Positions 8,331 through 45,266 of a stretch of 64,000 bases of DNA are shown here, in pieces. A model generated the notes under the pieces. It had not been told where the DNA came from. It searched no databases and saw only the letters and a list, made by a program, of their open reading frames with translations. The position numbers and the translations under genes were made by a program. How positions within the stretch are numbered: the first letter of the stretch is position 1; every line of letters begins with the position of its first letter. Source of the stretch: Pavona decussata (lineage: Eukaryota); contig CDRNST010000104.1 of assembly GCA_977016875.1 (NCBI GenBank), positions 3,410,001 through 3,474,000 of the forward strand, given 5' to 3'.

Positions 8331-11300
8331 ATGTTTGGCCGGTCGCCGCCAAATATTCTGGCGACTTCAGTAGTTTGTTTCTTACTCTTTCTTCAATTTC
8401 AGTGGTCTCCAACGCAAGCGAAGCCTTACTCAAAACAAGAGTTTTTAAGTACATATACAGCAGGTAACCTTGGAGGTGTCCGTGAAGAAGATTGGCCGGA
8501 ATTTGTAAACTATAATAATGGACAAAATATAGAAAGAAGTAAGAGAAGTCCAACTGAAGTGGAAGATGAAACACTGGACAGTTTGGTAGAGAAAACTTTA
8601 AGTGTAAGAGCTCGAAAGAGACAAGGTATTGAAACGCCGATACAACCTTTGAATTCAGACTCTCCTTTAGATCTTCCACACTTTAGCACTGAAGAACATG
8701 TTCGCTCAAAAGTTAACCAACCTGATAGTGAATCGGTTGGTGTAACGGTGGAAGAAGAAAAGAAAGCAGATGACGACATCTCTAGTACGAAGGATTCGAA
8801 AGGAGGTGATAATAACGTCAAGCCGGCAACGGGAAATGAATCAAACGAACTGCATCAAGACGAAAATGTTTCTTCGAGTAATGAAAATTTGAACAATAAC
8901 AAACAGAGAGGAACAGAAAACAAAGAGAATTTAGCAGCACAGGATAAATCTGATTCCAGCAAAGTCAGTCTAAACACTGATTCAAGTACTGACAACAAAA
9001 ACAGTAAAGATACTGGGGAAAGCAAAGCAGACTTGAGCAGGTCCGTTGATGAAAATGCACAAGTTCGTACGGTCCAAGGTACCAGTCAGATAAATAAAAT
9101 TGGCAATATTCCTAATGACAAGAGCGGTTCAAAATCTACACCACTGGACAACGATCAGTCTAGTTCAGTTACCGCTAGTACCAAAACAAATCAACAGGAA
9201 ATCCAAACTACAAATACAAATAATGCCAACAAACAGCAGGTAGACACCGACGTAAGTAAACCCACCGCAGCGAAACCCGAAACATCGGGTTTAGTTTCGA
9301 GTAATCAAAAACCGGCAGCTCCTTCAGAACAACGTCCACCAACTAACTCCCAGTTATCCGAAGAAAGCAAACCGATAAACACAGTACCTCAAATAAAAAA
9401 TGAACCAGAGGAACCGGTTCGAGATGCATTGGGGAATAGTGGATCAGAAATTGTGACAACTCATTCTCCCCGAGAGCCTGAACCTGAACTTGATTCATAC
9501 TCAGAAAGAAGCGCGGAAGCGAAACCTTCTAATGGACCTGAGGTTGGACATTTTCAAGTAGATGACAAATCTGCCGATCTTGAAATAAACGCTAACTCTG
9601 CCGGGGTAAAAGTTAAAGCTAAACCCGCCTCGTTACAGGTGGTTTCACGCCCTGGTTCTCACGCCGCATCGGGGGCACAAGAGCGATCTTTGTTCGGCCA
9701 TTACCACTACCCGCCTTATCATGTTCATCACCACTGGTATCCTGGCTTGCGTAGGTCATACGGGCATTTCCACCGACGCCATTTCTTCAATCCTTACCCG
9801 CCTTTTCCTGAAAGGCGTAGTTTCGAACGCTTCTACGACGAAGCACCTTTCTACCGTCGCCGCTTGCACTACTGGTACCCTCACAGACATCGACACCATT
9901 TCCCGGATTCCTATTTGTACGAAAGATCCCAACTAGAGGAGCCGGAAGAGCCTTTAAGATATCGTCGGCGAAGACGCCATAAACGGCGTTTTAGGCATAT
10001 GAACGGTCCGTATCGACGCCAGTTTTATAACAACATTCCGATAACGAATGGCATGGAATCAACTCCGATGGGCGTGCCACCGGAAGAAGGAACAATGCCT
10101 CAGTTACCAATTGGCCCACTTCAACCATTTGCACAGCGGCAGAATATTATAACGCCAATGCCACCTCCGATAAACGTTGCTGGAAATCCACCGCCTGGCT
10201 TACTTGGAGGAATGAACGCGGAGAACTTTCCAATGAACGAAATGAGCAATTTTAATGGGATAAATCAAGTAAATGGCGCATTTAATGGGATGGGTAATAT
10301 GGGCACAACGGGATTCAATTCTCCAGAACAAATTGGCGCCATTGAAGGTTTACCAGTTGGAATGAACGGTGGTTTGGAAGGAATGCAAGCAGCTGAACAG
10401 ACACCCGGTATAACCAGAGAACTACCAAACAGGAAAACTTTAGCTGAGGAACCAAGAAAGGCATTCAAGAAGACTGCGATCGTTTCTGGGAAGAAGGACA
10501 ACCACACAACAACTAAAGAACACTCACACGATCAAAATACAGCACTTAAGAACAAACACTCAGAAGAAGGTAAAAAGATGCAGACAACTGGCAGCACAAA
10601 GAAAGCAAAGATAAACCTAAAAAGTTGGGAAAAAACTCTCAAACGTTATCATCGACTCAATAAGTTTACGTCAAAATCACACGAAAAACATCAATTTCGT
10701 AGGAGTACCAAATCTTCTTCTTTAGACTCGGAAACAAAGAACACTGAAGGAAAAGTTCTACAAAAACACCGCATCTCGCATCTTCACTCACAGCGTGCAA
10801 AAGACACAAAAGGGAAGCGAAAGAACGAGATTATAATGCACCGTCCACCAATCATATATCACCCTCCGCCTGAAATCTATCACCGCCCTGACATTGTGGT
10901 TCACCGTGCACCGATTATGCTGCATCGGCCGCCTATAATTTACCATCAGCCTCCCGTTGTTGTTCACCGACCAGCAATCATCTACCATCAACCACCCATA
11001 GTCTTCCATCAACCTCCTCCAATGGTCCATCAGCCAATCCTGCGCTCTCACGACACATGGGTGACAAAGCCTGTGGTGTATCACACAGCATCCACAGTTT
11101 CTCACGATAAGACATACTTTGGAGTACCGTCTCACGTGTACACTGGCTCTTATGGTGAAGGATGCCACGGAGGACATTGTTCTTACAGAAAAGGAAGTGT
11201 GCCACATAGAAATAATTCCCAAGCTACCCTTCATAAGATAAAAACAAAACGCGACAGTTTGAGTGACTATATGGCTTATTTTACGTCCTTGTGGAAGGCT

Positions 11301-14300
11301 AATGGCATGACCAAAAGAAACGTTCATGATGACTACGATTTTATCACGTCAAGGGATGGTGCAAAACAAAAATTAATTTACACAAGTGTGAATTCTGGTG
11401 GGATAAGTAAAAGAGACAGCGCTACAGATTACAACAGATACATTCACAGCATATGGAACCATAAAGTCAAACGAGAAGCTGGTGATTTAAAAAACGGAAC
11501 AGAGAAGAAAAAGAAGAAAGACGTCGTTGTCAACCGCCCTCCTATAATTTATCATCCTCCACCTGAAATTTACCACAGGCCAGACATAGTGGTACATCGC
11601 CCTCCTCTTGTGATTCACAGGCCACCCATTATATACCATCAACCACCAGTAATAGTTCATCGACCAGCCGTGGTGTATCATCAACCACCGATTGTATTCC
11701 ACCAACCTCCCCCTGCAGTTAGCCAGCCTTTGCTGTATTCTCACGACTCTTTCACTGTTCATCCTACGTTCTTTGCTACACATCATGGTTCTGTTGTGCG
11801 AGACTTCGGGCACTATGTAGGGGTTCCAAATGTCATCACTAATTACGGAAACCCACTTTTTGGGAGAGGACCGCCCATTGGCAAGAGATCAAAGATAGAA
11901 ACGCCAAATTCAGTTAACGAAACTCTATCGAAAAGCTCAAATTCAACGGGGACTACGTCCAAGAAAGCCACAATTCAAGACAACAAGAAAAAAGAAAAGA
12001 ATGACACTAGTGAAAAAGCAAAGAAAAAGAACACTGTTTTGGTTCATAGGCCTCCAATAATTTATCACCCACCCCCTGAAATTTATCATCGGCCTGTGAT
12101 TGTGGTACATAGACCACCCATCATGATTCATCGGGCACCAATATATTATCATCAGCCGCCGGTGGTTGTTCATCGTCCTGCTATAGTGTATCACCAGCCG
12201 CCGCTGATATTTCATCAACCACCTCCAATGGTGCATCAGCCAATACTAAGGTCCCACGATACGTGGATATCTCACCATGTGGTGGTTCCTTACTCCTCAA
12301 GTGTTATGCATCACCACACCTACGTTGGCGTGCCTGACGCATTTACCGTTCATCACTTCGCAGGAGGACACAGCTTTTATAAGTCAGACATTTTAAGGCA
12401 TAACGACCGAGATAATGAACGTGCATCTGAAAGAAATGAAATAACTGGTAAGAAAACGTCGACGGAAAAACAGAAAGATTTACCCAAGAAGCACAAAATT
12501 ACTTCACATGATAAAACCAAACACACTTTGAATCTCAAAATTAAGAAGGCGGCTGCTCAAAAGGGCGGAAAGAAAAACGCAGTCATAGTGCGACGTCCTC
12601 CAGTTATTTACCACCCACCACCAGAAATCTACCACAGGCCAGAAATAGTAGTTCATCGCGCTCCTATTGTAATTCATCGAGCTCCAATAATTTACCATCA
12701 ACCTCCTGTGATTGTACATCGACCTGCTATTGTGTATCACCAGCCGGCGCTCATATTTCATCAGCCGCCACCTATTGTACACCAACCGTTTTACAGATCA
12801 CATGACACCTATGTCCATATGCCAGTTGCGAGACTATACTCATCTCGGATAAACCATTTAGGACACACGTACCACATTCCACACGCCTACTACCACGGTC
12901 ATGGTGGTGTTATTCACCATATGGCTTATGACAAATCTAAAGTACCTCAAAAGCAGCATATTAAAGACGAAAAAGGGGAGACAAGGACCACTGTTAAAAA
13001 GAGAAAGAAGTCAAAAACAGAGAAAACTAGCCATCATGCAGAAAGAAAGCATGCCACCTTAACAAAAAGCAAAGACAAAACAGAAACAGGAACAAAACTT
13101 CACAAGAATCATAAAATTCTTTACCATAAGGCAAAGGAGACTACAGAAAAAGCAAACAAAAAAAACTCTGTAGTTATACACCGACCACCAATCATTTACC
13201 ATCCACCCCCAGAGATTTATCATCGCCCAGACATCGTAGTGCACCGCGCTCCTATAGTTCTCTACCGTGCTCCGATTGTGTACCATCAGCCTCCAGTGGT
13301 GGTTCATCGTCCAGCCATTGTTTATCACCAGCCACCTATCGTTTTCCATCAGCCACCGCCTATGGTCCACCAGCCAGTTCTCCACTCACAAGATACTTGG
13401 GTGACCAAACCGGTAGCCATCCCATACGCATCTCATGTACATCACATAGCCACCTACAGGGGTGTTCCCCACGAAGAGATCTTTATGCATGGGATTGGCA
13501 CAGGAGCGTTCGGAAAATCCAGAGTTCCTGTTAGAGGGACCCGCAGAAACAAGATAGATAGTGTTGGCGATGAGAGAAAGAACCAAACAGACAACAAAGA
13601 AACAAAGGAAGCGAAAAATTTGAACGAGTCGAATGATAAAGGGAAGAATCGTACAACGAGAGCTGCATACAGTGAAAAGCAAGGTAAAGATACAATAGGA
13701 GCAGCAGAGAGAATAATACGAGCATTAACGGATTCACTTACAGATAAACGATTGGAATTTATGGTGAAGAAGAATCCCATTGGAGTTGGTGCAAGAATCC
13801 AAAGAAGCCTTCAAAATATATTCCCTGTGTATGGAGACTCTTTATCACTAACTGCCTCAAACCCTCATAATTCAATCAAGATTCCAGGACAATCTGTCGG
13901 TGCGGTAACGAGAATTCAACGATCCAACGGTGCCTTTTGGAGTCCGGTGGGTGCTGGTGCTAGGATACGGAGGGCCGTAGCAGAGCCATGGAACACTCTT
14001 GAAGGTGAGAATCCATATGAAATGAATAAACGTAGTAGTGAGGAAAGTGAAAACCCCTCTACACCTGACGAAAATGCAGACAAAAACACTAATAGCACCA
14101 AAAAGACAATACTTATAATTCGCAGGCCACCGATACTTTATCATCCACCAAGCCACATGATCCATCGACCATCCATAGTTGTTCACAGGCCGGACATTAT
14201 AGTCCACCGTCACCCCATCGTCTTTCACAGACCACCAATACTAGTTCATCGTCCCCCAATCATAATCCATCGCCAACCAGTACTTATTCACAGGCCGCCA

Positions 14301-17300
14301 GTAATAGTTCATCGACCGCCATTGGTGTTTCACCGGCCACCTATAATTATTCACCGTCGTCCTTATATTATTCATCATCATCCTATTCTGTTCCATCGAC
14401 CACCAATTATTATACACAGGGGACCGCAAATGATAGTGCATCACTCCCACCTAATTCATCATTATCCTATGCACATGATACACATGCACTGTCCTGGTTG
14501 TGGTTTTGGAAAATCCACCGTTGCACGATTGCAAGGTAAAAGAACTGATCAAGACGGTAAGAAAACATCAAATTCAGACAGACAACATAAAGACGCTACT
14601 GTCAAGGACTCCCAACGGAAAGATTCTAACCTGCCAAAACGCTCTGTTGCAGACAAGAAGTTAAAGAAAAGTTCCCGAGAAGAGGACCATAACAAAAAGA
14701 AGAAAGACGGACACAAAAAGAAGAAAGACGTAGTAGTCAATAGACCCCCGATTATTTACCATCCGCCACCAGAGGTATACCACAGACCAGACATTGTTGT
14801 TCATAGGGCTCCCATTCTTATTCACAGGCCACCTATTGTATACCATCAACCTCCTGTTGTAGTTCACAGACCAGCGGTTGTTTATCACCAACCACCCATT
14901 GTGTTCCACCAACCTGCACCGGCAGTGAATCAACCTCTGCTATTCTCACACGATAGTTTTGTTGTACATCCTATGGCTTTTGCATCCCACATGGGATCTG
15001 TTGTAAACGACGCTGGTCATTATGTTGGTTTACCGCACGGTGGAGTAACTAATTACCCAGGTTCTATATCCCATGGACCAACAGGACACATCATTCCTTA
15101 TTTAAATCCACCCAACTGGTCAAGAAGAGCTCAAGTTTCTAAACCGCTGGACGAAAAGCATACAAAAATCAACCATGGGAAGAATAACAAAGACCGGAAA
15201 CGTTCCTCTGGGACGACTGATGGCACTCACAGAAGAAGCGCAGGAAACAGTAGGAAACTTGTAATACAGGAAAGCAAGGAGACCAAAGGTGAGAGAAAGA
15301 ATAAAGTTATCGTTGCACGACCACCTCTGATTTATCACCCACCACCTGAAATTTATGATCGCCCAGACATTATTGTACACAGACCAGACATTGTGATCCA
15401 TCAACCCTCAGTTGTGTACCACCAGCCATCTGTAGTAGTCCACAGGGCACCGGTGGTTTATCATCAGCCTCCTGTTGTATTTCACCAACCAGCTCCAATG
15501 GTTAGCCAACCAGTGTACCACGCCCATGACACGTACATGGCACACCCCGTATATCATCCGCAAGAGAGCCACATTTCGCACTCTGCAACATATGTAGGAG
15601 CACCTCATTACTACCCAGGATACAACAGTTACGGATGGGGCTTACAAGGGAATATACCCACTGCACATATACAGCCAACTCCACAGATCCCTCAATATGG
15701 TTATACAACTGGTCCTACTCATCCTGGTTTCAGTGGATACACACCATATTCAGCCTCCCTTGGAAATGCCTTCGGAAGATCAAAGGTAGAAAATAAAAAG
15801 AAAGATAAATTTAAAGACAAAGAGACAAAATTGAAAAATGCTACCAAAAAGGGTCGTACGAGCAGGTCCGTGGAGTTAAGCAAACGTCACGTGCATCACC
15901 ATCATCATCACCACCATCGTCACCATCATCATGGCATTCATTATCGCGGAAGGAAACGCTTTTATCCTCTCCATCCAATGGCATCCTTTGCCCATCCAGG
16001 ACATCGCAAACATGTCGTCATTATACACCAACCTCCTTTGATATATCATCCACCGCCGCAAGTTTATACTCGGCCAGACATACTCATGCGTTTGCCTCCG
16101 CTTGTTTACCACAGGCCAGCGATAATGTTTCAACAGCCACCGACAGTAGTCCATCACCCCCAAATAGTTTATCACCAACCTCCCGTAGTCTTTCACAACC
16201 CTCCTTCAATAGTACACACACCAGTTATTCACACGCGCGAGATGTTGTCACCTCACCTTCAGCATGTAATGATTCCAACATCATCGTACATGCACTCTGT
16301 TGGAAACTTTTTTGAGCCTGGTGTCTCAGGTACGGCATACGGAAAGGCTCACATAGAGCGAACCGACGCAAGCAAAGACTCTTTGAAGAGCGAAGCTGAT
16401 ATGGAGACGAAAAGCAAGAACAAGAATGAAAAATCACACGAAAAGCGAGACGTTTCTAACGAACCTGAAAAAGAAATGAAAGATACGAAAATATCAAAGA
16501 AACAGAACGTTGATCTTGTAGTCCACCAGCCACCAGTGATGTATCATCCGCCACCGGATATCATTGACAAGCCAGCTGTTGTAATGCACCAACTTCCGAT
16601 AGTCGTGCACCGTCCGCCCATACTCATACACAGACCTCCTGTTGTGGTCCACAGCCCCCCAGTGATAATACACAGAGCTCCAATTGTACTTCATGACACA
16701 GCACCCGTGTATCATGTACCACATGGCAATTTCTTTCATCCAATGCGCTATGCTTTTGGAAAATCCACAGTAGAAGGCGAGAATCAGCAGCGAAACAAGG
16801 ACAAGCACAGCAAGGAGAAACATGATGAAAAGACCAGCCAGACGAAAGGCGCCAAACATTCAAATACTGAAAAAGCAAAAAGGAAAAACACCGTTCTTGT
16901 TAATAGGCCTGCGATGATATACCACCCTCCACCGGAAATCTATCATCGACCAAACATTATAGTACACCGCCCAGACATAGTCATACACCGACCATCAATT
17001 GTGTATCACCAGCCTTCCGTCCTTATTCACAAACCTCCCATAATCTATCGTCAGGCACCAGTTGTTTTCCACCAGCCTCCACCAATGGTGCATGAACCAA
17101 TTTTGCATGCACACGACTCGTACCTTGCATACCCTGTTGCACTGCCATACACATCACACATTCATCATGCAGCAACATACGTTGGGGCTCCACACTTTTT
17201 TGATCAGCCACATTTTGGTGGATTTGGTGGATATGTGGGGCATGCTTTTGGAAAATCGGAAGTTGAGGAGACCAAGAAAACACACCGCAGTGATGAAAAG

Positions 17301-20300
17301 GAAAGTAAGAACAAAAAACATACCAACACTGAGGTTAGAAAAAATTTAAGGTCAACGCGTGATGTGGACTCTGAAAAAACAACTAAAGAAAATAAAAAGT
17401 CAACCTCCACGGTCAGTTCTAAAGGGCACAAAAAGAACAAAGTTGTTATAAACAGACCGCCATTAATTTACCACCCGCCACCAGAGATATATGACAGACC
17501 AGATGTAATTGTTCATCGGCCGGATATCGTCATTCATCGTCCTTCTATTGTTTATCACCAATCATCAGTAGTTGTCCACAGACCGCCAATCGTATATCAA
17601 GCACCTTCTGTGGTCTTCCATCAACCGCCACCATTGGTGAATCAGCCCATAATGCACGCTCATGAAACTTACGTTGCTCATCCAGTACCAGTGCCCTACA
17701 CATCCCATATCCAGCACACATCAACCTATGTTGGTAGCCCACACCACTATCCTGGTGGATGGCACTATGGTTGGAGCCAACCTCAGCCGTATGGATTTAC
17801 CTGGAGTCAGCATCAGCCATTTGGTTTGGCATTCGGAAAGTCAAATGTGCCCGCAGCAAAGCTAAAGTCTTCAGGGAACCATAAGCCCGCAAATAAACAT
17901 AAAGTAAAACGAGCGGAGAAAGATCAAGCCAAAAAAAATGACAAAAACATAAGCCCAAAGTCTGAAGGGACCGGTAAGAAGAAAAACCAAGTACTTATAC
18001 AACGACCACCTTTGATATACCACCCACCGCCAGACGTGTACCACAAACCTGATATAATTGTGCACAGACCTGACATTGTTATCCACCGGCCTTCCGTGGT
18101 TTATCACCAGCCATCTGTTGTGGTTCACAGACCACCGGTGGTTTATCATCAGCCGCCAGTTGTTTTTCATCAGCCATCTCCAATGGTTAGTCAGCCAGTT
18201 CTACATGCACATGACACTTATGTCGCCCATCCATATTTTACGCCCTACTCATCCGATGTATATCACTGTGGAAGCTACGTTGGTGCTCCGCACTGTTATA
18301 ATGGCGGATGGGGGGAACACGGATATGGCTTTGCCCATGCCTTTGGAAAATCAAAAATACAAGTGGCTAACAAGAAACAAAAGCACCAAAAATACAAAAG
18401 CAAAGATCTAAAGGGCCACCGCAGAACCCTTGAGAAGGAAATCAAGGAGGCGGTGGATGAGATTAAATTAAAGAAGGAGGCCAAAAAGGGGATAAGGGCG
18501 AAAAAGAAGAACCTCGTCATAATGCGTCGGCCTCCTCTAGTCTATCACCCACCACCGGAGATTTATCACAAACCGGATGTCATTGTGCATAGACCCGATA
18601 TTGTCATCCACAGGCCTTCTGTAGTTTTCCACCAGCCTTCGGTTGTAGTTCATAGACCACCAGTAATTTATCAACAACCTCCAGTCATATTCCATCAGCC
18701 AGCACCCATGGTTCACCAGCCTATCCTTCATTCACATGACACGTATTTCGCGCACCCCCACTTTGTCCCGTTTGCGTCGCACTTACATCACGCAGGCAGC
18801 TACGTGGGTGCCCCACATTTTTATCCAGGAGGATGGGGCTTAGGAGGGCACACTGATGACTTTCACCACGCGTTTGGAAAATCAAAAGTCGAAAAATCGT
18901 CAAAACAGCATGTGAAGAGTGACCACGAGAATAAGGACGGAAATGATGACGATGGGGAGAAACGTTCTCCACCAGAGGCAACAGACTCTTCTGAGGAAAA
19001 TAAGCATAAAGGCAAAATTAAGGAAGCCACAAAAGGACACAAGAAAAACTTAGTAATCATGCGTCGGCCACCACTTATTTACCACCCGCCTCCAGAAATA
19101 TATCACAAACCAGATATAATTCTACACAGACCGGATATCGTTATTCACAGACCGTCAGTTGTTTTCCATCAACCATCCGTGGTGGTTCATAGACCACCAG
19201 TAATTTACCATCAGCCGCCAGTTGTTTTTCATCAGCCATCATCAATGGTACACCAGCCTATCTTCCATTCACACGAGACGTATGTTGCTCACCCTCATTT
19301 TGTGCCATATTTGTCCCACTTAACGCACGCTGGGTCTTATATAGGGGCACCACACTTTTTCCCAGGACACTGGGGACCAACACATGGGTTCGGACATTTA
19401 GCGGCACATGCATTTGGAAAATCCAAAGTAGAAAAAGCTGCAAAAAAAGTAAATACAAAAGCTGTGACTCCAAGAGCAAAGTCAGAGGAAGCTGTGCATT
19501 TTAAAACCAAACGAGAGGCAAAACATGAAAACTTGCATCGTGACTTGTCTGGTGTGAATCAAAAGGCAAAGCTAAAACAACAGTATTGGAAAGCCACGGG
19601 AGAAAAAGCAGAAAGAAAGGCTGTCCATTTACATCCCGAAAAGGAGACTAAGAAGGGTCACCATAAAGCACACAGAAAAAACTTAGTCCTGATACAACGT
19701 CCAGCTTTGATTTATCATCCGCCACCAGAAATCTATGACAGACCAGCTATCATTGTTCACCGACCCGATGTCGTCATTCATCAACCTTCCGTGGTTTACC
19801 ACCAATCTTCGGTGGTTGTCCATCGTCCACCAATTATATATCGCCCACCACCAGTAGTATTCCATCAACCAGCACCAATGGTACATCAGCCTATGTACAC
19901 TTCCCACGACATATATCATAGTCATCCGCACTTTGTCCCATATGCCTCTCATATCAAGCACACACAAACCTACGTAGGAGCACCGCATTACTACCCTGGA
20001 GGATGGAGGTATGGCTACGGCTTTTCTGAAGCCTCTATACCTCAACACGCTGGATTAAATGGGTGGAATGCATTTAACAGTCCATGGTATCAACCATCAC
20101 TTTACAGAGCGAATTACCTTACACCAACTGGTGTAGCATCGCCCAGCGGTATCCGCAGAAGATACCAGTCAGCATTTGCCAAGTCTGATGTTCAAAAGCA
20201 CGATGCGAAAACCGAAGACTTGAAGGACAATCACAAGAAAAAAGACGAAGGTAGCCAAAAATCGCATCATGTTCAAGAAAAAACAGGAAAACGAAATCGC

Positions 20301-23300
20301 CGCTCAACCGAGTCAACTAAGAGACGCCAAGGAAAGGGGCGCAAAACGGACGAAGGAGGCAAGAAGAACGTAGTAATGATAAGACGGCCTCCACTTGTGT
20401 ACCACCCACCTCCAGAGATCTATCACAAGCCAGACGTAATTGTGCATAGACCTGATGTAGTTATTCACCAGCCTTCTGTGGTATACCATCAACCTTCAGT
20501 TGTGGTTCACCGTCCACCAGTTATTTACAACCAGCCTCCGGTGGTATTTCATCAGCCAGCTCCCATGGTAAACCAACCAATTTTTCATGCGCATGAAAAC
20601 TACATGGCCCACCCTTACTTTGTTCCTTACGCAAGTCAGATCCATCATACTGGTACTTACGTTGGAGCTCCTGAATTCTTTCATGAAGTAAGGGCCTTTG
20701 GAAAGTCAGACGTTTCAAACAACAAATCAAAGTCTAAGAAGCCACACGAAAAGTCTGAAAAGAAAAACAAAATGGTGAAAATAGATAAACGAAAGAGCGC
20801 CAAGGGAATGGTTTTCCATCCACAAGAAGAAAGAGAAGAAAAACCATCAAGAAAGAATGACATAGTTGTTAGCCGTCCTCCTATTATCTACCACCCACCA
20901 CCAGAAATTTACCATCGGCCGGATATTGTAGTTCACAGAGCTCCTATAGTGCTTCACCGCCCACCGATAATCTATCACCAGCCACCAGTAGTTGTGCATA
21001 GACCTGCTGTCGTGTACCATCAACCCCCAGTAGTCTTCCATCAACCACCTCCCACAGTTCATCAACCCATTCTTCATTCTCACGATTCATTTGTTGTCCG
21101 CCCAGCCGCCAAATTCTTTCCACAAGGCTCTACGTTAACACATACCATGAATTATGTGGGAATTCCTAACCATGTAATACATGGTGATGAACTAGCGTTT
21201 CACCACTTTCATCGATCACAAATAGAACATTCTGGTAGAGATACATCGTATAAGAAGCCATCAACTGTCCAAGTGGCGAAATCGACCATCTCTAAAATAC
21301 CTACAACTAACAAAGAGAATACTCAAACAACCATAACAGACCAAACGCAAAAGAAGACTTTGCGATCTATCATACGTCACCACAAATTAACTAAAAGACA
21401 GCTCATTGGTTCACATTCACTTTTTGGATCCTTTTCTCCTATAAACAACATTCAAGATTCTGAAAAATCGGTTGAGCAGAACGAAAAGCTGTCAACTATA
21501 CCCGGAGATACATCAATTCGTGAAAATAGCATTGCCAAGAGGCAACTTATTGCACCAGAATCTATCGAGAGTGTCTTCCCTAACTTTATGCGCAACTCTT
21601 TACCCTCAGTTTACAATACACTGGAGATGGCAGCTTTGCAAAACCAAGCTTTAGCAGCCTCTGAGGACTCACCAGTATCAGACAAGGTTGACCAGGTACA
21701 TTTGCCTGGTTTTACACCCACTTTACCAACACTTCATGGTATAGGAAGGTCTGGAATTGAACGGTACCCTTTTCTTTTAAAACATTACCTGCCAGGAGCT
21801 CCAAAAGATGACTCGCCGGACGTACGCGTTCACATAGAAACAGCAAAGTCCTCTATACCGATTAAAGCACGTGGAAAGCGGCAGATTATCCCTATATTTC
21901 AGCAGCAAGAACCACCACAAGCATATCCAGCACTCTATCAGTCGCCAGGTCTTGAGAATTTGGAAGGGGCTATCCGCGAAGCTACACCTTCCTCCGTTTA
22001 CCGCCTCTTCAGTCCATACAATGCGATGAGTCATCCAGGTGCAGATCCATATCACTATCTACGAATCCCTTCCGCGTCATTGCATCATCCTCGCGTCAAT
22101 ATCAACGTGCAGTCAGCAAGATCTACGATACCTCACATTGGCCATGCTATTCAAAAGCGATCAAACAACAAAAAGTCAAAAAGACAGTTTTTGGCGGTCA
22201 TGCCACCTCTCTCTTCCCGTTTACCCGTTGGCTTAGGGGGTGGGATAATGCCCCTCCCTTTCTCACCTTACTCGGCCCTGTCCCGTTTCCCATATCCACT
22301 TTTACCCCGTCTAGACTATCCTCAAGAACCGGAAACCGAAGAAACCGCATTCACAGAAGCTTTACCAGTTCTTCCTCGTCCATCATCAATTCCTCATACT
22401 CCATACAGCGGATTTTCAGAAGACCAAGACAATGACTCACCGTCATTCAATCCAGTGGCTTCATACTTAGCTGCACTTTATAATGGCTACTTTGGGTACC
22501 CATTTTATCGTCCCCATAAAAAACCTAAAGTCCACGTGGAGGTACACGCATCAAAATCACAGATACCCAAAGTCACAGAGAACAGGAAATACGGTCATTC
22601 TCGTATTTCTAAACGGCAACTGTATAATTTCTTACCACGTTCACCAGTAATCGCAAATCACTATACCTTGCCTGCAGCTTTAAATTACGGAATACAAGGG
22701 TTTCACCAGAATTCTCCGCATGTAAGCATTAACGTAGAAACAGCAAAGCGTCAAGGAATTCCTTCATTGTTAAAGGAAAAGAGGTCCCCAGTGGCAAAGA
22801 AGTTAAAGCAACACGAACAAAGAAGAACTGGAGATAAAAGAGACCAGCTTTTACAAAACGGAGAAAATGGTCAGGAATCTTTTCCATACCAAGAAAACTC
22901 GAATTCTGTTGCAACACAGGATAATCAGTTTGTTATTTCAAGAGAAAGCAGTCAACCACAAGAGGAGATCGCTACAAACAACAACGAGATCGCTCAACCA
23001 CTAGCGCAACAGCAGCTTCTGCAAGAAGCGGCTGGGCAACAGCAAGAGCAGCAAGAAGCAGAACAGCAACAAGAAGAGCAGCAACAAAGACAGCTTGAAC
23101 AACAAGAGCAGCAACAGACCATAGTACAACAACCAGAACCTTTTCCCAACCAACTGACAATGGAACCGTTCCAAGCTCAGCAGCTAGCTTTTCGGGCACC
23201 ACTGACTCCAATGCAAGTACCAATGCAGCCACCAGGGCAACCAGCTTTTAATGCACCTTTTGTGGCACCATTTATGGCTCCTGTCCAAGGTGTGTTCCCT

Positions 23301-26300
23301 GGCGTATTACCTGGAGTTTCAGGCAATCATGTTGCCGAACAGGCTATTGCACAACCAGGATCGAATGCTGGAGAAGGTCAACCGAAGCATACCTCAATTA
23401 ATGTTAACGTGGCCGCCAAATCTATCGTTCCAAAGAAAACTTCAAAGAAAAATAAAAAATCCCACAATCCGAAATTTACAGCTTCACAACGAAGAAATAT
23501 TCCTAAAAAGTCTGCGATGGAAAAAGGGTTTGAAAAGCGCGAGAGGATTTCTCTTTTAACGCGCTTTCCTGCAATGCAAGTATTGCCCCAAACGTTTAAG
23601 CAGGACGGCGTATTGATGCCTGCTTTCAATACTTTACCGGTTAATCACAGAATCAAGGGTAATGGGATGCTCTTGGAAGAATTACAAAGGCAGAGAAAGC
23701 ACCAAATTCCAAAAACAGCTAAACATAATGACAGAGGCAGTCAAACAGACAAGGAAAACAGTGAACAAGTCAAACCAAAGGAAAACGCAAAAAAACGCCA
23801 GTTCTACGGCATCTCGCAATCAATGCTAACATCTCAACCATATGTATTAGCACCACAACCTAAAATCCATCTAAGACCCAAAGTTTCAGTCAACGTGGAA
23901 GTCAGTAAGAGAAAGTCTGCGTTTCCAAACGGAAAATTTCATTTAGAACTTAAAGATGTAGAAAGTGGGTTTAATCGCAACGAAATGAAACCAGAACGGC
24001 GAGTGTCTGGAATAGAACAGAAGATTCAAATGCCAAATGTGGATACGCCTCGAGTGCGTCAGATTCCCTCGAAAGTGCAGCGACACAGAGTGACAGTTCA
24101 TGGAGAAAGAGCAACAAAGAAGGGAGTGAGACAGCAAGTACTCAAACGAGGACAAAACAGCGACAAAAAACGGCAAATATACGGCTTTTCGGAGTTACCA
24201 AATCAGGGTTTAATGCAGCCATTGTCGTTAGGCAGCCAAAATGAACCGCTTGGATATTTACCTAGAGCACTACACAGTCCACGTATTTCTATCAATGTTG
24301 AGGCGTCAAAGCGATCACCGGACCCTTCACATGATGTCCAAAAACGCCAACTGCTTGGTCTACAACCCGATGCCAAGGAAACCCTAGATCAAGCTCAAGA
24401 ACCCGTTCCATCTGGGCAACCAACATATCAGTCGGATGACCTAGTTGCGGAAGATGCTGCACAGTTACCTATCCAAGTACAAGATCAATCCCGGGAAAAT
24501 GAAGTATCGCCTATGGCTATTGAATCAAATCCCACAATGACACAACAACAGCAAGTCCAAGACCTATCACCAGATAGCTTAGAACCTCAGGATGCTTTAA
24601 CTGATATCTTTAATAAGCGTCCACGAGTTTCTGTTCATGTGGAGGCTTCGAAAAGAGGGAAAAACGAAAGGAAACTACGAAGTGCTTTAAATAGAAAACA
24701 ACGCAGCGTTAAAGAAAAAACGGGCGGCAAAAGACAATTTCAACAAATGGAACAAGGGGCGAGAGATTATGGGCCTTATATGCAAGGACAAAGACCTGTC
24801 ATGGATACTCAGCAGTTAGTGGTCGAACAACAGCAACAGCAAATTTCTCAGCCACTGGATTTTATTTCCCCTGTTGGTCAACAACAGAATGTTGAACAAT
24901 TTCAGCCAGTAATGTTTCCAGTTGCGCAGCCAGGGGAGGCAAAAGCGAGACCAAAAGTGAGCATAAATGTTGAAACCGCAAAGTCTTCCATATATGGACA
25001 CAGTGACCATTCAAAGGAATATGGATCGGAAAAGAAAACGAAGCGACAACTGTTTGGCACCGTACCCCTTCTTAGTTCCCTTGGACAAACAACAGCACCT
25101 GGTGATTCACGAAAGATAATTAACCCAAGGTCATCTGTACCCCTCTTAACGGAGAAACCTGCAGACAAAAAAGATCTGCGATTGCGGAGAAGACAGCTTT
25201 ATAATTATCTAGGAGGCCAACAGGAACAGATTCTTCCTACCCAGGCGATACAAGATACCACTGAGTTTGAACAACAACAGCAAGAACAACAACAGGACAT
25301 ACCAATACAGGCATCTCAACAGGATGTTCCTGTAAACCTGCAGCAAGCCTCTGTATTGGAATCAAGTAATCAGTATCAAGGCCAAATAGAGGAACCAGAA
25401 AACAGTCAGACAGCTCCTGCCATACCCACTCAACCTGAATCATCATTTAACCCTCTTGGTACAATTCACCGTCCTCGTGTGAGTATAAACGTTCAAACAG
25501 CTAAATCAAAAGTGCCAAGCATGATGAAAGCCAAAATACCAAAATCAGAAAACAAAGGATCTAGTTCCCAGGACCACGAAAAGAAGAAATTCAAAAGACA
25601 GTTTGATATCCTTGGTGGCGGTGGTGAAATTGAAAGACGGCGGCGCCCAAAGTTTTTGACAGCACCACCATTAAAGAAAGGGCGGGGTGAAAACCTATTC
25701 GGTTTGGGCACTAATGTGAACAAGCCCGTTGAAGTCTTTGCAAATCCAATCGCGAACCTTGTTGCTGGACGAAAAAGACCAAAGTTTGGGGGAATTCAGA
25801 TCGATAGTCCCACAGATGTTGGAGCTTTACGGCTTAAAGGAGGTGCCAACCCTTTAGGAGGTGCCCTCGCTTCTGATGTGGGTGCACCACCTATAATTCA
25901 AGACAGTGCCGCAGCGGGAATTGCCCCATTTGTTCAGGAACCTGCAGCGACTGGCAGTAATCCTTTTTTACCTCCGAGTGGTATCGCAGGGCCTCAAATT
26001 GATGCTCTTGAAAAAGGAGACACTGGTACCTTACCAATAGCTGGACCTCCTTTGAACAGACCAGCAATTATTCCGTTACCTGCTCTCAATCAGGCTCTCT
26101 TCCAAAACTTGCCTTTGGCAACTGCTACAGGACCACCTACGGAACGTCCTCTACTACTTTCTCCACGAGTGCTTCCGCTAGCCCCAATCCTACCAATGGC
26201 AGTACCACCTCCACCACCACTGGCAGTACCACCAGAAGCAGTACCACAACCGCTACAGACTCTAGATGAGGCAGGACCAGAGCTGCAACATGATCCTCAG

Positions 26301-26507
26301 ATTGGAGCCGTACTCCCACCAGTAATTCCCATGCCATTTCCGAACATTGCAGCACCTCCGCCACTTCCCAAACCAGAGACCTTGATCCCGGAGTCCGACG
26401 ATGATAAACCATCGGTGCATGTTAATGTGGAAACGTCGAGATCGCATGTTCCTGATACGAAACATCATTCCAAGCACCAAGCGACTGGCCGAGCCAATCG
26501 TGGCTAG
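8331..26507 (+). CDS. Giant single-ORF secreted His/Pro-rich modular polyprotein precursor (cluster gene 2, 6058 aa)
   Basis: An 18,177-nt ORF with no internal stop. Signal peptide MFGRSPPNILATSVVCFLLFLQFQWSPTQA, 18 His-Pro heptad modules, ~14 C-terminal modules mostly opened by KR-Q, many dibasic sites, and AATAAA at 26810. Confidence 0.93.
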   Translation: MFGRSPPNILATSVVCFLLFLQFQWSPTQAKPYSKQEFLSTYTAGNLGGVREEDWPEFVNYNNGQNIERSKRSPTEVEDETLDSLVEKTLSVRARKRQGIETPIQPLNSDSPLDLPHFSTEEHVRSKVNQPDSESVGVTVEEEKKADDDISSTKDSKGGDNNVKPATGNESNELHQDENVSSSNENLNNNKQRGTENKENLAAQDKSDSSKVSLNTDSSTDNKNSKDTGESKADLSRSVDENAQVRTVQGTSQINKIGNIPNDKSGSKSTPLDNDQSSSVTASTKTNQQEIQTTNTNNANKQQVDTDVSKPTAAKPETSGLVSSNQKPAAPSEQRPPTNSQLSEESKPINTVPQIKNEPEEPVRDALGNSGSEIVTTHSPREPEPELDSYSERSAEAKPSNGPEVGHFQVDDKSADLEINANSAGVKVKAKPASLQVVSRPGSHAASGAQERSLFGHYHYPPYHVHHHWYPGLRRSYGHFHRRHFFNPYPPFPERRSFERFYDEAPFYRRRLHYWYPHRHRHHFPDSYLYERSQLEEPEEPLRYRRRRRHKRRFRHMNGPYRRQFYNNIPITNGMESTPMGVPPEEGTMPQLPIGPLQPFAQRQNIITPMPPPINVAGNPPPGLLGGMNAENFPMNEMSNFNGINQVNGAFNGMGNMGTTGFNSPEQIGAIEGLPVGMNGGLEGMQAAEQTPGITRELPNRKTLAEEPRKAFKKTAIVSGKKDNHTTTKEHSHDQNTALKNKHSEEGKKMQTTGSTKKAKINLKSWEKTLKRYHRLNKFTSKSHEKHQFRRSTKSSSLDSETKNTEGKVLQKHRISHLHSQRAKDTKGKRKNEIIMHRPPIIYHPPPEIYHRPDIVVHRAPIMLHRPPIIYHQPPVVVHRPAIIYHQPPIVFHQPPPMVHQPILRSHDTWVTKPVVYHTASTVSHDKTYFGVPSHVYTGSYGEGCHGGHCSYRKGSVPHRNNSQATLHKIKTKRDSLSDYMAYFTSLWKANGMTKRNVHDDYDFITSRDGAKQKLIYTSVNSGGISKRDSATDYNRYIHSIWNHKVKREAGDLKNGTEKKKKKDVVVNRPPIIYHPPPEIYHRPDIVVHRPPLVIHRPPIIYHQPPVIVHRPAVVYHQPPIVFHQPPPAVSQPLLYSHDSFTVHPTFFATHHGSVVRDFGHYVGVPNVITNYGNPLFGRGPPIGKRSKIETPNSVNETLSKSSNSTGTTSKKATIQDNKKKEKNDTSEKAKKKNTVLVHRPPIIYHPPPEIYHRPVIVVHRPPIMIHRAPIYYHQPPVVVHRPAIVYHQPPLIFHQPPPMVHQPILRSHDTWISHHVVVPYSSSVMHHHTYVGVPDAFTVHHFAGGHSFYKSDILRHNDRDNERASERNEITGKKTSTEKQKDLPKKHKITSHDKTKHTLNLKIKKAAAQKGGKKNAVIVRRPPVIYHPPPEIYHRPEIVVHRAPIVIHRAPIIYHQPPVIVHRPAIVYHQPALIFHQPPPIVHQPFYRSHDTYVHMPVARLYSSRINHLGHTYHIPHAYYHGHGGVIHHMAYDKSKVPQKQHIKDEKGETRTTVKKRKKSKTEKTSHHAERKHATLTKSKDKTETGTKLHKNHKILYHKAKETTEKANKKNSVVIHRPPIIYHPPPEIYHRPDIVVHRAPIVLYRAPIVYHQPPVVVHRPAIVYHQPPIVFHQPPPMVHQPVLHSQDTWVTKPVAIPYASHVHHIATYRGVPHEEIFMHGIGTGAFGKSRVPVRGTRRNKIDSVGDERKNQTDNKETKEAKNLNESNDKGKNRTTRAAYSEKQGKDTIGAAERIIRALTDSLTDKRLEFMVKKNPIGVGARIQRSLQNIFPVYGDSLSLTASNPHNSIKIPGQSVGAVTRIQRSNGAFWSPVGAGARIRRAVAEPWNTLEGENPYEMNKRSSEESENPSTPDENADKNTNSTKKTILIIRRPPILYHPPSHMIHRPSIVVHRPDIIVHRHPIVFHRPPILVHRPPIIIHRQPVLIHRPPVIVHRPPLVFHRPPIIIHRRPYIIHHHPILFHRPPIIIHRGPQMIVHHSHLIHHYPMHMIHMHCPGCGFGKSTVARLQGKRTDQDGKKTSNSDRQHKDATVKDSQRKDSNLPKRSVADKKLKKSSREEDHNKKKKDGHKKKKDVVVNRPPIIYHPPPEVYHRPDIVVHRAPILIHRPPIVYHQPPVVVHRPAVVYHQPPIVFHQPAPAVNQPLLFSHDSFVVHPMAFASHMGSVVNDAGHYVGLPHGGVTNYPGSISHGPTGHIIPYLNPPNWSRRAQVSKPLDEKHTKINHGKNNKDRKRSSGTTDGTHRRSAGNSRKLVIQESKETKGERKNKVIVARPPLIYHPPPEIYDRPDIIVHRPDIVIHQPSVVYHQPSVVVHRAPVVYHQPPVVFHQPAPMVSQPVYHAHDTYMAHPVYHPQESHISHSATYVGAPHYYPGYNSYGWGLQGNIPTAHIQPTPQIPQYGYTTGPTHPGFSGYTPYSASLGNAFGRSKVENKKKDKFKDKETKLKNATKKGRTSRSVELSKRHVHHHHHHHHRHHHHGIHYRGRKRFYPLHPMASFAHPGHRKHVVIIHQPPLIYHPPPQVYTRPDILMRLPPLVYHRPAIMFQQPPTVVHHPQIVYHQPPVVFHNPPSIVHTPVIHTREMLSPHLQHVMIPTSSYMHSVGNFFEPGVSGTAYGKAHIERTDASKDSLKSEADMETKSKNKNEKSHEKRDVSNEPEKEMKDTKISKKQNVDLVVHQPPVMYHPPPDIIDKPAVVMHQLPIVVHRPPILIHRPPVVVHSPPVIIHRAPIVLHDTAPVYHVPHGNFFHPMRYAFGKSTVEGENQQRNKDKHSKEKHDEKTSQTKGAKHSNTEKAKRKNTVLVNRPAMIYHPPPEIYHRPNIIVHRPDIVIHRPSIVYHQPSVLIHKPPIIYRQAPVVFHQPPPMVHEPILHAHDSYLAYPVALPYTSHIHHAATYVGAPHFFDQPHFGGFGGYVGHAFGKSEVEETKKTHRSDEKESKNKKHTNTEVRKNLRSTRDVDSEKTTKENKKSTSTVSSKGHKKNKVVINRPPLIYHPPPEIYDRPDVIVHRPDIVIHRPSIVYHQSSVVVHRPPIVYQAPSVVFHQPPPLVNQPIMHAHETYVAHPVPVPYTSHIQHTSTYVGSPHHYPGGWHYGWSQPQPYGFTWSQHQPFGLAFGKSNVPAAKLKSSGNHKPANKHKVKRAEKDQAKKNDKNISPKSEGTGKKKNQVLIQRPPLIYHPPPDVYHKPDIIVHRPDIVIHRPSVVYHQPSVVVHRPPVVYHQPPVVFHQPSPMVSQPVLHAHDTYVAHPYFTPYSSDVYHCGSYVGAPHCYNGGWGEHGYGFAHAFGKSKIQVANKKQKHQKYKSKDLKGHRRTLEKEIKEAVDEIKLKKEAKKGIRAKKKNLVIMRRPPLVYHPPPEIYHKPDVIVHRPDIVIHRPSVVFHQPSVVVHRPPVIYQQPPVIFHQPAPMVHQPILHSHDTYFAHPHFVPFASHLHHAGSYVGAPHFYPGGWGLGGHTDDFHHAFGKSKVEKSSKQHVKSDHENKDGNDDDGEKRSPPEATDSSEENKHKGKIKEATKGHKKNLVIMRRPPLIYHPPPEIYHKPDIILHRPDIVIHRPSVVFHQPSVVVHRPPVIYHQPPVVFHQPSSMVHQPIFHSHETYVAHPHFVPYLSHLTHAGSYIGAPHFFPGHWGPTHGFGHLAAHAFGKSKVEKAAKKVNTKAVTPRAKSEEAVHFKTKREAKHENLHRDLSGVNQKAKLKQQYWKATGEKAERKAVHLHPEKETKKGHHKAHRKNLVLIQRPALIYHPPPEIYDRPAIIVHRPDVVIHQPSVVYHQSSVVVHRPPIIYRPPPVVFHQPAPMVHQPMYTSHDIYHSHPHFVPYASHIKHTQTYVGAPHYYPGGWRYGYGFSEASIPQHAGLNGWNAFNSPWYQPSLYRANYLTPTGVASPSGIRRRYQSAFAKSDVQKHDAKTEDLKDNHKKKDEGSQKSHHVQEKTGKRNRRSTESTKRRQGKGRKTDEGGKKNVVMIRRPPLVYHPPPEIYHKPDVIVHRPDVVIHQPSVVYHQPSVVVHRPPVIYNQPPVVFHQPAPMVNQPIFHAHENYMAHPYFVPYASQIHHTGTYVGAPEFFHEVRAFGKSDVSNNKSKSKKPHEKSEKKNKMVKIDKRKSAKGMVFHPQEEREEKPSRKNDIVVSRPPIIYHPPPEIYHRPDIVVHRAPIVLHRPPIIYHQPPVVVHRPAVVYHQPPVVFHQPPPTVHQPILHSHDSFVVRPAAKFFPQGSTLTHTMNYVGIPNHVIHGDELAFHHFHRSQIEHSGRDTSYKKPSTVQVAKSTISKIPTTNKENTQTTITDQTQKKTLRSIIRHHKLTKRQLIGSHSLFGSFSPINNIQDSEKSVEQNEKLSTIPGDTSIRENSIAKRQLIAPESIESVFPNFMRNSLPSVYNTLEMAALQNQALAASEDSPVSDKVDQVHLPGFTPTLPTLHGIGRSGIERYPFLLKHYLPGAPKDDSPDVRVHIETAKSSIPIKARGKRQIIPIFQQQEPPQAYPALYQSPGLENLEGAIREATPSSVYRLFSPYNAMSHPGADPYHYLRIPSASLHHPRVNINVQSARSTIPHIGHAIQKRSNNKKSKRQFLAVMPPLSSRLPVGLGGGIMPLPFSPYSALSRFPYPLLPRLDYPQEPETEETAFTEALPVLPRPSSIPHTPYSGFSEDQDNDSPSFNPVASYLAALYNGYFGYPFYRPHKKPKVHVEVHASKSQIPKVTENRKYGHSRISKRQLYNFLPRSPVIANHYTLPAALNYGIQGFHQNSPHVSINVETAKRQGIPSLLKEKRSPVAKKLKQHEQRRTGDKRDQLLQNGENGQESFPYQENSNSVATQDNQFVISRESSQPQEEIATNNNEIAQPLAQQQLLQEAAGQQQEQQEAEQQQEEQQQRQLEQQEQQQTIVQQPEPFPNQLTMEPFQAQQLAFRAPLTPMQVPMQPPGQPAFNAPFVAPFMAPVQGVFPGVLPGVSGNHVAEQAIAQPGSNAGEGQPKHTSINVNVAAKSIVPKKTSKKNKKSHNPKFTASQRRNIPKKSAMEKGFEKRERISLLTRFPAMQVLPQTFKQDGVLMPAFNTLPVNHRIKGNGMLLEELQRQRKHQIPKTAKHNDRGSQTDKENSEQVKPKENAKKRQFYGISQSMLTSQPYVLAPQPKIHLRPKVSVNVEVSKRKSAFPNGKFHLELKDVESGFNRNEMKPERRVSGIEQKIQMPNVDTPRVRQIPSKVQRHRVTVHGERATKKGVRQQVLKRGQNSDKKRQIYGFSELPNQGLMQPLSLGSQNEPLGYLPRALHSPRISINVEASKRSPDPSHDVQKRQLLGLQPDAKETLDQAQEPVPSGQPTYQSDDLVAEDAAQLPIQVQDQSRENEVSPMAIESNPTMTQQQQVQDLSPDSLEPQDALTDIFNKRPRVSVHVEASKRGKNERKLRSALNRKQRSVKEKTGGKRQFQQMEQGARDYGPYMQGQRPVMDTQQLVVEQQQQQISQPLDFISPVGQQQNVEQFQPVMFPVAQPGEAKARPKVSINVETAKSSIYGHSDHSKEYGSEKKTKRQLFGTVPLLSSLGQTTAPGDSRKIINPRSSVPLLTEKPADKKDLRLRRRQLYNYLGGQQEQILPTQAIQDTTEFEQQQQEQQQDIPIQASQQDVPVNLQQASVLESSNQYQGQIEEPENSQTAPAIPTQPESSFNPLGTIHRPRVSINVQTAKSKVPSMMKAKIPKSENKGSSSQDHEKKKFKRQFDILGGGGEIERRRRPKFLTAPPLKKGRGENLFGLGTNVNKPVEVFANPIANLVAGRKRPKFGGIQIDSPTDVGALRLKGGANPLGGALASDVGAPPIIQDSAAAGIAPFVQEPAATGSNPFLPPSGIAGPQIDALEKGDTGTLPIAGPPLNRPAIIPLPALNQALFQNLPLATATGPPTERPLLLSPRVLPLAPILPMAVPPPPPLAVPPEAVPQPLQTLDEAGPELQHDPQIGAVLPPVIPMPFPNIAAPPPLPKPETLIPESDDDKPSVHVNVETSRSHVPDTKHHSKHQATGRANRG
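10815..21227 (+). repeat. Coding array of 18 His-Pro heptad modules within gene 2
   Basis: Recurrent core RPPIIYH-PPPEIYH-RPDIVVH-RAPIVLH-RPPIIYH-QPPVVVH-RPAVVYH-QPPIVFH-QPPPMVH-QPILHSH-D, separated by Lys-rich spacers. Confidence 0.95.
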
Positions 26508-27128: not shown

Positions 27129-27259
27129 NNNNNNNNNNNNNNNNNNNNNNNNNNNNNNNNNNNNNNNNNNNNNNNNNNNNNNNNNNNNNNNNNNNNNNNN
27201 NNNNNNNNNNNNNNNNNNNNNNNNNNNNNNNNNNNNNNNNNNNNNNNNNNNNNNNNNNN
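27129..27259. other. Assembly gap (N run)
   Basis: Run of N. Confidence 1.
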
Positions 27260-45040: not shown

Positions 45041-45266
45041 NNNNNNNNNNNNNNNNNNNNNNNNNNNNNNNNNNNNNNNNNNNNNNNNNNNNNNNNNNNN
45101 NNNNNNNNNNNNNNNNNNNNNNNNNNNNNNNNNNNNNNNNNNNNNNNNNNNNNNNNNNNNNNNNNNNNNNNNNNNNNNNNNNNNNNNNNNNNNNNNNNNN
45201 NNNNNNNNNNNNNNNNNNNNNNNNNNNNNNNNNNNNNNNNNNNNNNNNNNNNNNNNNNNNNNNNNN
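45041..45266. other. Assembly gap (N run)
   Basis: Run of N. Confidence 1.

Follow-up and report, generated by a model that had tools for sequence, protein, structure and literature searches.

Several secreted structural proteins are built from short, histidine-bearing repeats, among them mussel foot protein-4 (mfp-4), the His-rich flanks of preCol, the Nereis jaw protein Nvjp-1, the squid suckerins and the His-rich proteins of beaks, and in such biomaterials His provides a pH- or metal-switchable cross-link. In Cnidaria, minicollagens and nematogalectins are encoded by phylum-wide genes that define the hallmark organelle of the phylum; to our knowledge, few genes occur across Cnidaria and nowhere else. 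Here, we describe an open reading frame (ORF) of 18.2 kb located at 8331..26507 on the plus strand of a 64,000-nucleotide stretch of the coral Pavona decussata (contig CDRNST010000104.1, positions 3,410,001 to 3,474,000; hereafter the window), which encodes a giant protein of 6058 residues. We consider it moderately probable that the protein is a secreted structural scaffold, strongly polycationic and rich in His, whose tail is processed by a convertase, and that it is the product of a single-copy, cnidarian-restricted gene.

By analogy, the giant protein would work most like the His-rich modular biomaterial proteins (mfp-4, Nvjp-1, suckerins) and, in its block design, like tropoelastin, and it is a member of none of these families. 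It resembles the His-rich biomaterials in its apparent secretion, its short His-bearing repeats and the alternation of putative β-forming blocks with Gly/Tyr-rich or charged blocks, whereas it is 10-100 times larger, has a Pro-anchored heptad, belongs to another phylum and has no detected sequence relationship with them. Tropoelastin likewise alternates hydrophobic, self-associating blocks with Lys-rich blocks, but it is not homologous, its repeat chemistry is different and there is no evidence of lysyl-oxidase cross-links in the giant protein. The cnidocyst proteins (spinalin, minicollagens, cnidoin and NOWA) are cnidarian, secreted and structural, with a signal peptide and a pro-piece ending in Lys-Arg (KR), as in the giant protein, and spinalin is Gly/His-rich. 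With 7 Cys in 6058 residues, no minicollagen cysteine-rich domain and no Gly-X-Y run, the giant protein falls outside the minicollagens and cnidocyst-wall proteins. Profilaggrin and multi-copy neuropeptide precursors share with it many units per translation product, dibasic sites and, as in pyroglutamyl peptides, KR-Gln sites; the giant protein differs from them in its basic spacers, its units of 45-390 residues and the lack of a conserved cleavage site at most His-Pro modules. Nor is it an S100-fused protein of the filaggrin kind, as its N-terminal piece gave no Pfam hit and the organism is a cnidarian.

A coding gene of 18 kb

Purifying selection acts on the 18-kb ORF, which is a genuine coding gene and is represented in RNA runs. 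It starts with ATG and comprises 6058 codons plus a stop, with one terminal stop in its translation and the nearest upstream in-frame stop at 8262. The five other frames over the same interval contain 238-410 stops each, with longest open stretches of 117-186 codons, which therefore excludes a chance open frame and confirms the single stop-free frame reported in a preliminary description of this DNA. The ORF is free of N, the masked N runs of the window lying outside it (27129-27259 and 45041-45266). The encoded protein has a mass of 684.7 kDa, an isoelectric point (pI) of 9.8, a His content of 7.3% and a net charge of about +325 at pH 7 and about +650 at pH 5.5.

Within the ORF, Tandem Repeats Finder detected only short 21-nt arrays with 62-80% matches, so the repeated modules described below are old and have diverged at the DNA level, a pattern that speaks against repeat collapse or expansion during assembly. 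Independent ENA and Logan contigs, some as long as 1.25 Mb, carry a call for the same product of 6051-6058 residues. In run X15, a nearly identical contig of 12.5 kb covers the full 6 kb that was compared, but it may itself be the source of this DNA and does not count as independent support. The start of the signal peptide and the sequence tag that closes the protein are kept between the coral and the sea anemone Nematostella, which indicates that the start codon at 8331 and the stop codon mark the genuine boundaries of the gene. His-Pro modules are confined to this ORF within the 602-Mb genome from which the window comes, and the gene is single-copy.

A word search with residues 1-5000 recovered 22 long relatives of the giant protein. 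The scleractinian orthologues comprise at least 12 ORFs of 5417-6329 residues, with named models in Oculina patagonica (LOC144643886), Stylophora pistillata (SpisGene9031) and, within one cluster, Pocillopora damicornis (pdam_00011478). The orthologue of Nematostella vectensis (LOC116618347) has 5019 residues and that of Hydra vulgaris (LOC100210570) has 3771-4502 residues in three isoforms. LOC116618347, LOC100210570, SpisGene9031 and pdam_00011478 belong to one orthogroup with the giant protein, sharing collinear full-length similarity, the same zones and position-wise corresponding modules. In the orthologue of one 73%-identical relative, taken from an ENA coral assembly (L002), a frameshift around 11500-11720 splits the gene into calls of 555 and 5417 residues; sister assemblies keep 5990-5994 residues, and the frameshift is probably an assembly indel.

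The preliminary description held that such low-complexity exons are easily fragmented or masked by annotation pipelines; these pipelines did not lose this gene. RefSeq or GenBank models exist in Nematostella, Hydra, Stylophora, Pocillopora and Oculina, all of them unnamed, some lacking modules, and every giant orthologue is labelled 'uncharacterized' or 'hypothetical' in the databases. As these gene models are public, the ORF itself is no discovery; the family, the module, the phylum-wide conservation and the function are undescribed in everything that we searched. Literature searches with the Nematostella, Hydra, Stylophora, Pocillopora and Oculina identifiers, the orthologue of a neighbouring gene and four peptide motifs returned nothing relevant, the portions of the nematocyst and matrisome literature accessible to us contained no mention of such a protein, and the Nematostella matrisome supplements held no match to it. 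An 18-kb low-complexity exon can thus be a strongly constrained gene and go unnamed in every genome that annotates it.

The orthologue comparison proposed in the preliminary description was carried out with the Nei-Gojobori method over 3822 codons aligned with L002 and yielded a ratio of non-synonymous to synonymous divergence (dN/dS) of 0.18 for the whole alignment. Among 26 listed differences within the ORF, a small and selected sample, 10 are synonymous as compared to the 22% expected; the seven that fall in the N-terminal spacer are without exception non-synonymous, and of the seven at residues 481-1125 all but one are silent.

A 5.9-kb probe of the locus was found in 19 runs from seven studies, four of them 'coral metagenome' metatranscriptomes, and RNA contigs could be compared with the window over 5.2 of the 18.2 kb of the ORF. 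In run X1, presumed to be RNA, four contigs tile 8306-13499 with no internal joint, depth being about zero at 7700-8299, and run X2, also presumed to be RNA, gives an equal tiling. X1 includes a spliced contig, which indicates that it contains processed RNA. The contigs of RNA library X10, which are about 96% identical, carry insertions of 3, 3 and 9 nt within the ORF and 1-nt indels upstream of the ATG. The proposed giant intronless exon thus holds over the stretch that RNA contigs could check, where no splice was found. In a related coral with an orthologue of 6241 residues, contigs of two recurring sizes (24,232-24,235 and 21,038 nt, in at least 15 Logan runs) look like a transcript with defined ends.

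Zones, modules and their history

The protein is zoned as initially described, into an N-terminal spacer, a domain shared with neighbouring genes, an Arg/His-rich zone, 18 His-Pro modules and a Gln/Pro-rich C-terminal zone. A signal peptide read from the sequence (residues 1-31, 8331..8423) has its start and its junction, between '...QA' and 'KPY', conserved in Nematostella. It is followed by a pro-region and an acidic Ser/Asn/Thr-rich spacer (8424..9515). The pro-region harbors two dibasic sites, SKR (residues 71-73) and RKR-Q (residues 96-99), both conserved in 8/8 orthologues, and the spacer, which reaches about residue 395, has a pI of 4.7 and evolves fast (dN/dS 0.36). The shared domain spans residues 396-450; the 41 residues of its core (402-442, 9534..9656) are identical in 13/13 anthozoan orthologues checked, including Nematostella, and diverged in Hydra. 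Next come an Arg/His/Tyr/Pro-rich zone (residues 451-590, 9681..10100; R 18%, P 13%, H 11%, Y 11%; pI 10.3), whose composition is conserved in Nematostella and Hydra, and a Gly/Pro/Asn/Met-rich zone (residues 591-700) followed by the first Lys-rich linker (residues 701-830, K 21%), both within 10101..10820.

The His-Pro array occupies residues 831-4303 (10821..21239) and was delimited with an anchor motif and a hidden Markov model (HMM) of the module. A regular expression finds exactly 18 'YHPP[PS]' anchors and the HMM built from them matches 19 times, because module 6 is a double-length heptad run. Each module is about 125 residues long and comprises about ten heptads of consensus [RQ]-P-[PDAS]-[IV]-[VI]-[VYF]-H, a His/Gly/Tyr-rich tail closing with '[FY]-G-[KR]-S-x-[VI]', and a Lys-rich spacer (K 19%). 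The array contains 128 heptads in all, 115 of which have His at position 7. Short KR-delimited units lie between modules 1 and 2 (residues 973-1049, 11247..11477), with all four of their dibasic sites conserved in 8/8 orthologues. Between modules 5 and 6, at 13900-14050 (residues ~1760-1900), there are repeated 'IGAGARI-x-R-[AS]-L'-like motifs, which are short, conserved, also present in Nematostella and unrelated to the heptads.

The C-terminal Gln/Pro zone (residues 4304-6058, 21240..26504) is made of about 12 units, each with a conserved KR-Gln site at its start and a tag at its end, the final tag closing the protein, likewise in Nematostella. There are 11-12 tags of the form 'P-x-V-x-[IV]-x-V-[EQ]', with a fuller form P-[RK]-V-S-[IV]-N-V-E-x-x-[KR]-S-x-[IV]-P. 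The protein holds 13 KR-Gln sites (12 in this zone and one at residues 96-99), compared to about 1.5 expected from composition, and they are mostly conserved in 7-8 of 8 orthologues. The zone itself is as previously reported, with a count of 11-13 units by tags or KR-Gln sites replacing the estimate of about 14. In Hydra, a 568-residue Gln-rich ORF devoid of a signal peptide (L001, 26231-27937) lies 300 nt past the annotated stop of the giant gene and carries two tags, KPRIHVAIETEK... and KPEVHVHISTEKS.... Hydra thus also possesses the C-terminal zone that anthozoans have in fused form, encoded either by a gene of its own or by an exon missed in annotation.

Constraint is strongest in the heptads (dN/dS 0.053) and in the shared domain (0.05), intermediate in the module tails (0.15) and weakest in the spacers (0.30-0.36), with synonymous divergence alike across zones (0.64-0.90). 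Since synonymous divergence is ordinary in the shared domain, the constraint on it acts on the protein.

No Pfam family fits the protein convincingly, in line with the original statement that it has no recognisable globular domain; that statement undersold the modules, which are units of about 125 residues with a heptad dN/dS of about 0.05, positional orthology across Cnidaria and a β structure predicted by AlphaFold2. Cuticle_3 (PF11018, the family of Tenebrio pupal cuticle protein C1) and Chorion_3 (PF05387), both insect families of low-complexity structural proteins rich in Pro, Val, His and Tyr, are the only Pfam models that respond. Cuticle_3 narrowly exceeded its cutoff of 27.1 bits, scoring 27.5 on a single 1500-residue piece in which no stretch passed, and Chorion_3 scored 14-18.6 bits on pieces against a gathering cutoff of 22; scans of single modules at E<0.01 gave 2/65 matches for Cuticle_3 and 6/65 for Chorion_3 (best 2.4e-4). 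Both families share a P-x-x-[VI]-x-H type of composition and likewise occur in a secreted structural context. This likeness is a compositional resemblance and not membership.

A profile of 65 modules was compared with 1.84 billion representative sequences and matched 42 proteins at E<=1e-30. Four are long orthologues; each of the other 38 is collinear with the protein of the coral, Nematostella or Hydra (26-92% identity) and looks like a fragment or exon of an orthologue. A gap in score follows, and the weaker hits that were inspected (E 1e-27 and weaker) correspond to bacterial, protist or junk-frame heptads (KPETIVA, AAEKPEV) and were rejected as relatives. No module relative outside the orthogroup was found among these representatives, and we infer from similarity, not from organism labels, that the gene is restricted to cnidarians as far as searched. 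It would thereby be another phylum-wide cnidarian gene, among the largest, with a domain that has no relatives elsewhere.

AlphaFold2, run on module 2 with a 65-row alignment, returned a model with a mean predicted local distance difference test score (pLDDT) of 73.8 and a predicted template modeling score (pTM) of 0.34. In this model, the heptads form three-residue strands every seven residues, mostly with a pLDDT of 89-96 (76 for one ten-residue block), and the tail is disordered. Foldseek found no match to the model in the PDB at E<=0.001, VIA-align wide gave a best Z of 3.0 with the long β hairpins of pore toxins, which is within noise, and the ESM Atlas returned shape matches of TM<=0.35 and a best feature score of 0.79, which is below the useful range. 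A short C-terminal unit was predicted without secondary structure (mean pLDDT 69); an internal clasp, in which the N-terminal Gln-aromatic end would pair with the C-terminal tag, was considered and is unsupported, as the predicted unit is structureless.

The module HMM hits each full-length scleractinian ORF 18-21 times, a single ORF exceeding 19 hits. It hits the Oculina gene model 17 times, as it does P0017, the relative that diverges most, and gives 15 hits in Nematostella and 13 in Hydra. Each of the 19 coral modules has the Pocillopora module of equal rank as its best match, and the positional partner is recovered in Nematostella for modules 1, 2, 3, 5, 8 and 19. In a maximum-likelihood module tree (IQ-TREE, LG+C20), module 2 of the coral groups with module 2 of Nematostella and of Hydra with support 98/88, and coral module 8 groups with Nematostella module 6 (99/95), with Hydra module 6 joining at 80/59. 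Supported coral-Nematostella pairs were also obtained for coral modules 3, 4, 5, 10 and 11; the central block of coral modules 12-18 is not resolved and Hydra modules 7-12 cluster by species. Single modules remain 73-83% identical between coral, anemone and Hydra. The supported groups joining modules of the three animals indicate that the array predates the anthozoan-medusozoan split, with two modules traceable, on the sequence tree, to the coral-Hydra ancestor. By the same reading, individual modules were retained in parts of the array, with no concerted evolution, and the central portion grew later, an unusual pattern for a long tandem array, which is not homogenised here.

Structural scaffold or precursor

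We infer from the signal peptide that the giant protein is secreted. In the model that we propose, the signal peptide and the pro-region would be removed and the His-Pro array would stay in one piece. The heptads would each contribute a short β strand, one per seven residues, and sheets would arise by stacking or pairing of these strands; the His at each seventh position could mediate pH- or metal-sensitive assembly or cross-linking, as in other His-rich biomaterials. The Lys-rich linkers may bind a polyanion, and the invariant 41-residue domain, common to three smaller genes, two of them in the window, might dock the proteins of the gene cluster together. Cleavage of the conserved KR-Gln sites by a convertase of the furin/PC type would divide the C-terminal zone into roughly 12 pieces, each with an N-terminal Gln (possibly pyroglutamate) and a C-terminal β-strand tag. 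In materials terms, such a protein would be a natural block copolymer of His-bearing β heptads and Lys-rich linkers.

The most plausible site of action is the cnidocyst or another secreted matrix, adhesive or cuticle, a suggestion prompted by the occurrence of the gene in every cnidarian examined and by its representation in RNA runs from coral samples; the cnidocyst as such is a guess, to which we give a minority chance. A bolder and tentative proposal, possible without being probable, would make the protein a core building element, so far unrecognised, of a phylum-defining structure. The cnidocyst (its capsule, tubule or spines) is the most plausible candidate, followed by the adhesive or cuticular matrix of the polyp. 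The protein would act there as a 0.5-0.7-MDa His-Pro scaffold with modules kept since the cnidarian ancestor, would adopt a new β 'heptad ladder' fold, would carry a 41-residue docking domain that does not vary across Anthozoa, and would co-assemble with the smaller secreted proteins of the cluster. The Nematostella and Hydra orthologues make knock-outs and localisation directly feasible.

A structural scaffold is more likely than a precursor of 30-plus peptides. The latter reading, in which a polyprotein carrier is cut between all modules to release at least 30 His-Pro and Gln/Pro polypeptides in fixed stoichiometry, finds some of its expected features in the sequence: a hydrophobic N-terminus and a pro-region ending in conserved dibasic sites (SKR and RKR-Q), 83 dibasic sites in total, 43 of which are conserved in at least seven of eight orthologues, the short units bordered by KR between the first two modules, and the conserved KR-Gln series of the C-terminal zone. 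Each module and C-terminal unit also closes with basic-Ser-x-[IV]-[P/E] followed by a fast-evolving basic spacer, and conserved cargo separated by variable spacers is the pattern of precursors. The distribution of the conserved sites is uneven, however: they are located in the pro-region, the Arg/His zone, residues 973-1049, a few places up to module 11 and the C-terminal series, so that conserved dibasic flanks delimit the units of the C-terminal zone and residues 973-1049, but a single conserved site, at residue 2705, lies within modules 9-19. The earlier claim of more than 30 products is therefore only partly supported, by the N-terminal, module 1/2 and C-terminal sites and not by modules 9-19, which almost no conserved site separates. 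Moreover, the spacers are basic and not acidic as is usual in peptide precursors, the order and identity of the modules have been kept for hundreds of millions of years when order need not matter for freely released products, and no cleavage product has been observed. We consider complete cleavage unlikely. A defensive role appears more improbable still: a mucus or surface protein with histatin-like antimicrobial or metal-sequestering His/Arg/Lys parts, whole or cleaved, would agree with the charge of about +325, the His content, the basic Arg/His/Tyr zone, secretion and the presence in RNA runs of coral samples. Antimicrobial effectors are usually fast-evolving and variable in copy number, whereas this gene is single-copy, with strongly constrained heptads (dN/dS 0.05) and a fixed module order, and its hydrophobic β-type heptads look built to assemble and not to dissolve. 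That the ORF is no functional gene at all (an open frame arisen by chance in low-complexity sequence, a product of misassembly or a pseudogene) could be argued from the low-complexity composition and from the absence of a curated domain, but this view is refuted by our results and retains virtually no probability: the ORF has no internal stop against 238-410 in each other frame, a dN/dS of 0.18, orthologues from coral to Hydra and the same extent in independent assemblies, its indels are in-frame only, and RNA contigs cover it.

Several observations weigh against the scaffold that we favor. The designation 'structural scaffold' leans on composition and analogy, and the module model (pTM 0.34, no PDB counterpart) may describe only a regular extended chain. 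All modules end in the conserved basic-Ser-x-[IV] motif, and if this motif is a cleavage site, the polyprotein reading gains. A complex prediction between the shared domain of the giant protein and that of the gene at 46236-46421 scored 0.01, which is not evidence either way for docking. The RNA contigs reach over no more than 5.2 kb of the 18.2-kb ORF and cannot establish that the transcript is a single molecule, the RNA nature of X1 and X2 is only guessed, and X10, a true RNA library, covers upstream intergenic DNA as well.

The gene cluster around the giant ORF

The shared domain occurs in four copies in the 602-Mb genome: that of the giant gene and three weaker ones, at 46266-46391 and 39274-39384 of the window and on another contig. 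It reads like three tag-like strands and, together with the tags, is an obvious candidate for docking the giant protein to the cluster proteins. The weak copy at 39274-39384 belongs to a gene (39160-41127, plus strand) encoding a 656-residue secreted His-Pro nonamer protein with relatives in Actinostola and Nematostella (LOC5512467). LOC5512467 and the Nematostella giant gene both sit on contigs of 13,717,364 nt, which hints at conserved linkage of the nonamer gene and the giant gene. Further downstream, the plus-strand ORFs at 45816-47327 and 48617-49774 contain a shared domain (71% identical over 42 residues), one tag and KR-Gln sites, the grammar of the giant C-terminal zone in a smaller, apparently multi-exon gene.

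Upstream of the giant gene, the minus strand encodes at 1664-3430 a 588-residue secreted protein rich in Gly/Tyr/Trp and Gly/Cys, whose blocks close with '[FY]-x-[KR]-S-x-[IV]', the same punctuation as in the giant modules. One contig of run X1, 187 nt long, links the blocks 7508-7646 and 8063-8110 (minus strand), skipping 416 nt that are bounded by CT...AC on the plus strand, that is, by GT..AG on the minus strand, which points to a spliced opposite-strand transcript starting within ~270 nt of the giant ATG. This transcript may reflect a divergent promoter, or it may represent a distant 5′ exon of the Gly/Cys-rich gene on the minus strand. We considered the joint 7644/8061 as an intron in the 5′ untranslated region of the giant gene and rejected this assignment, as it has GT..AG ends only on the minus strand. 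Finally, an uninterrupted ORF of 486 residues at 53138-54598 (plus strand) encodes a leucine-rich-repeat protein with an EF-hand-like C-terminal end, an ordinary-looking cytosolic gene beside the secreted cluster.

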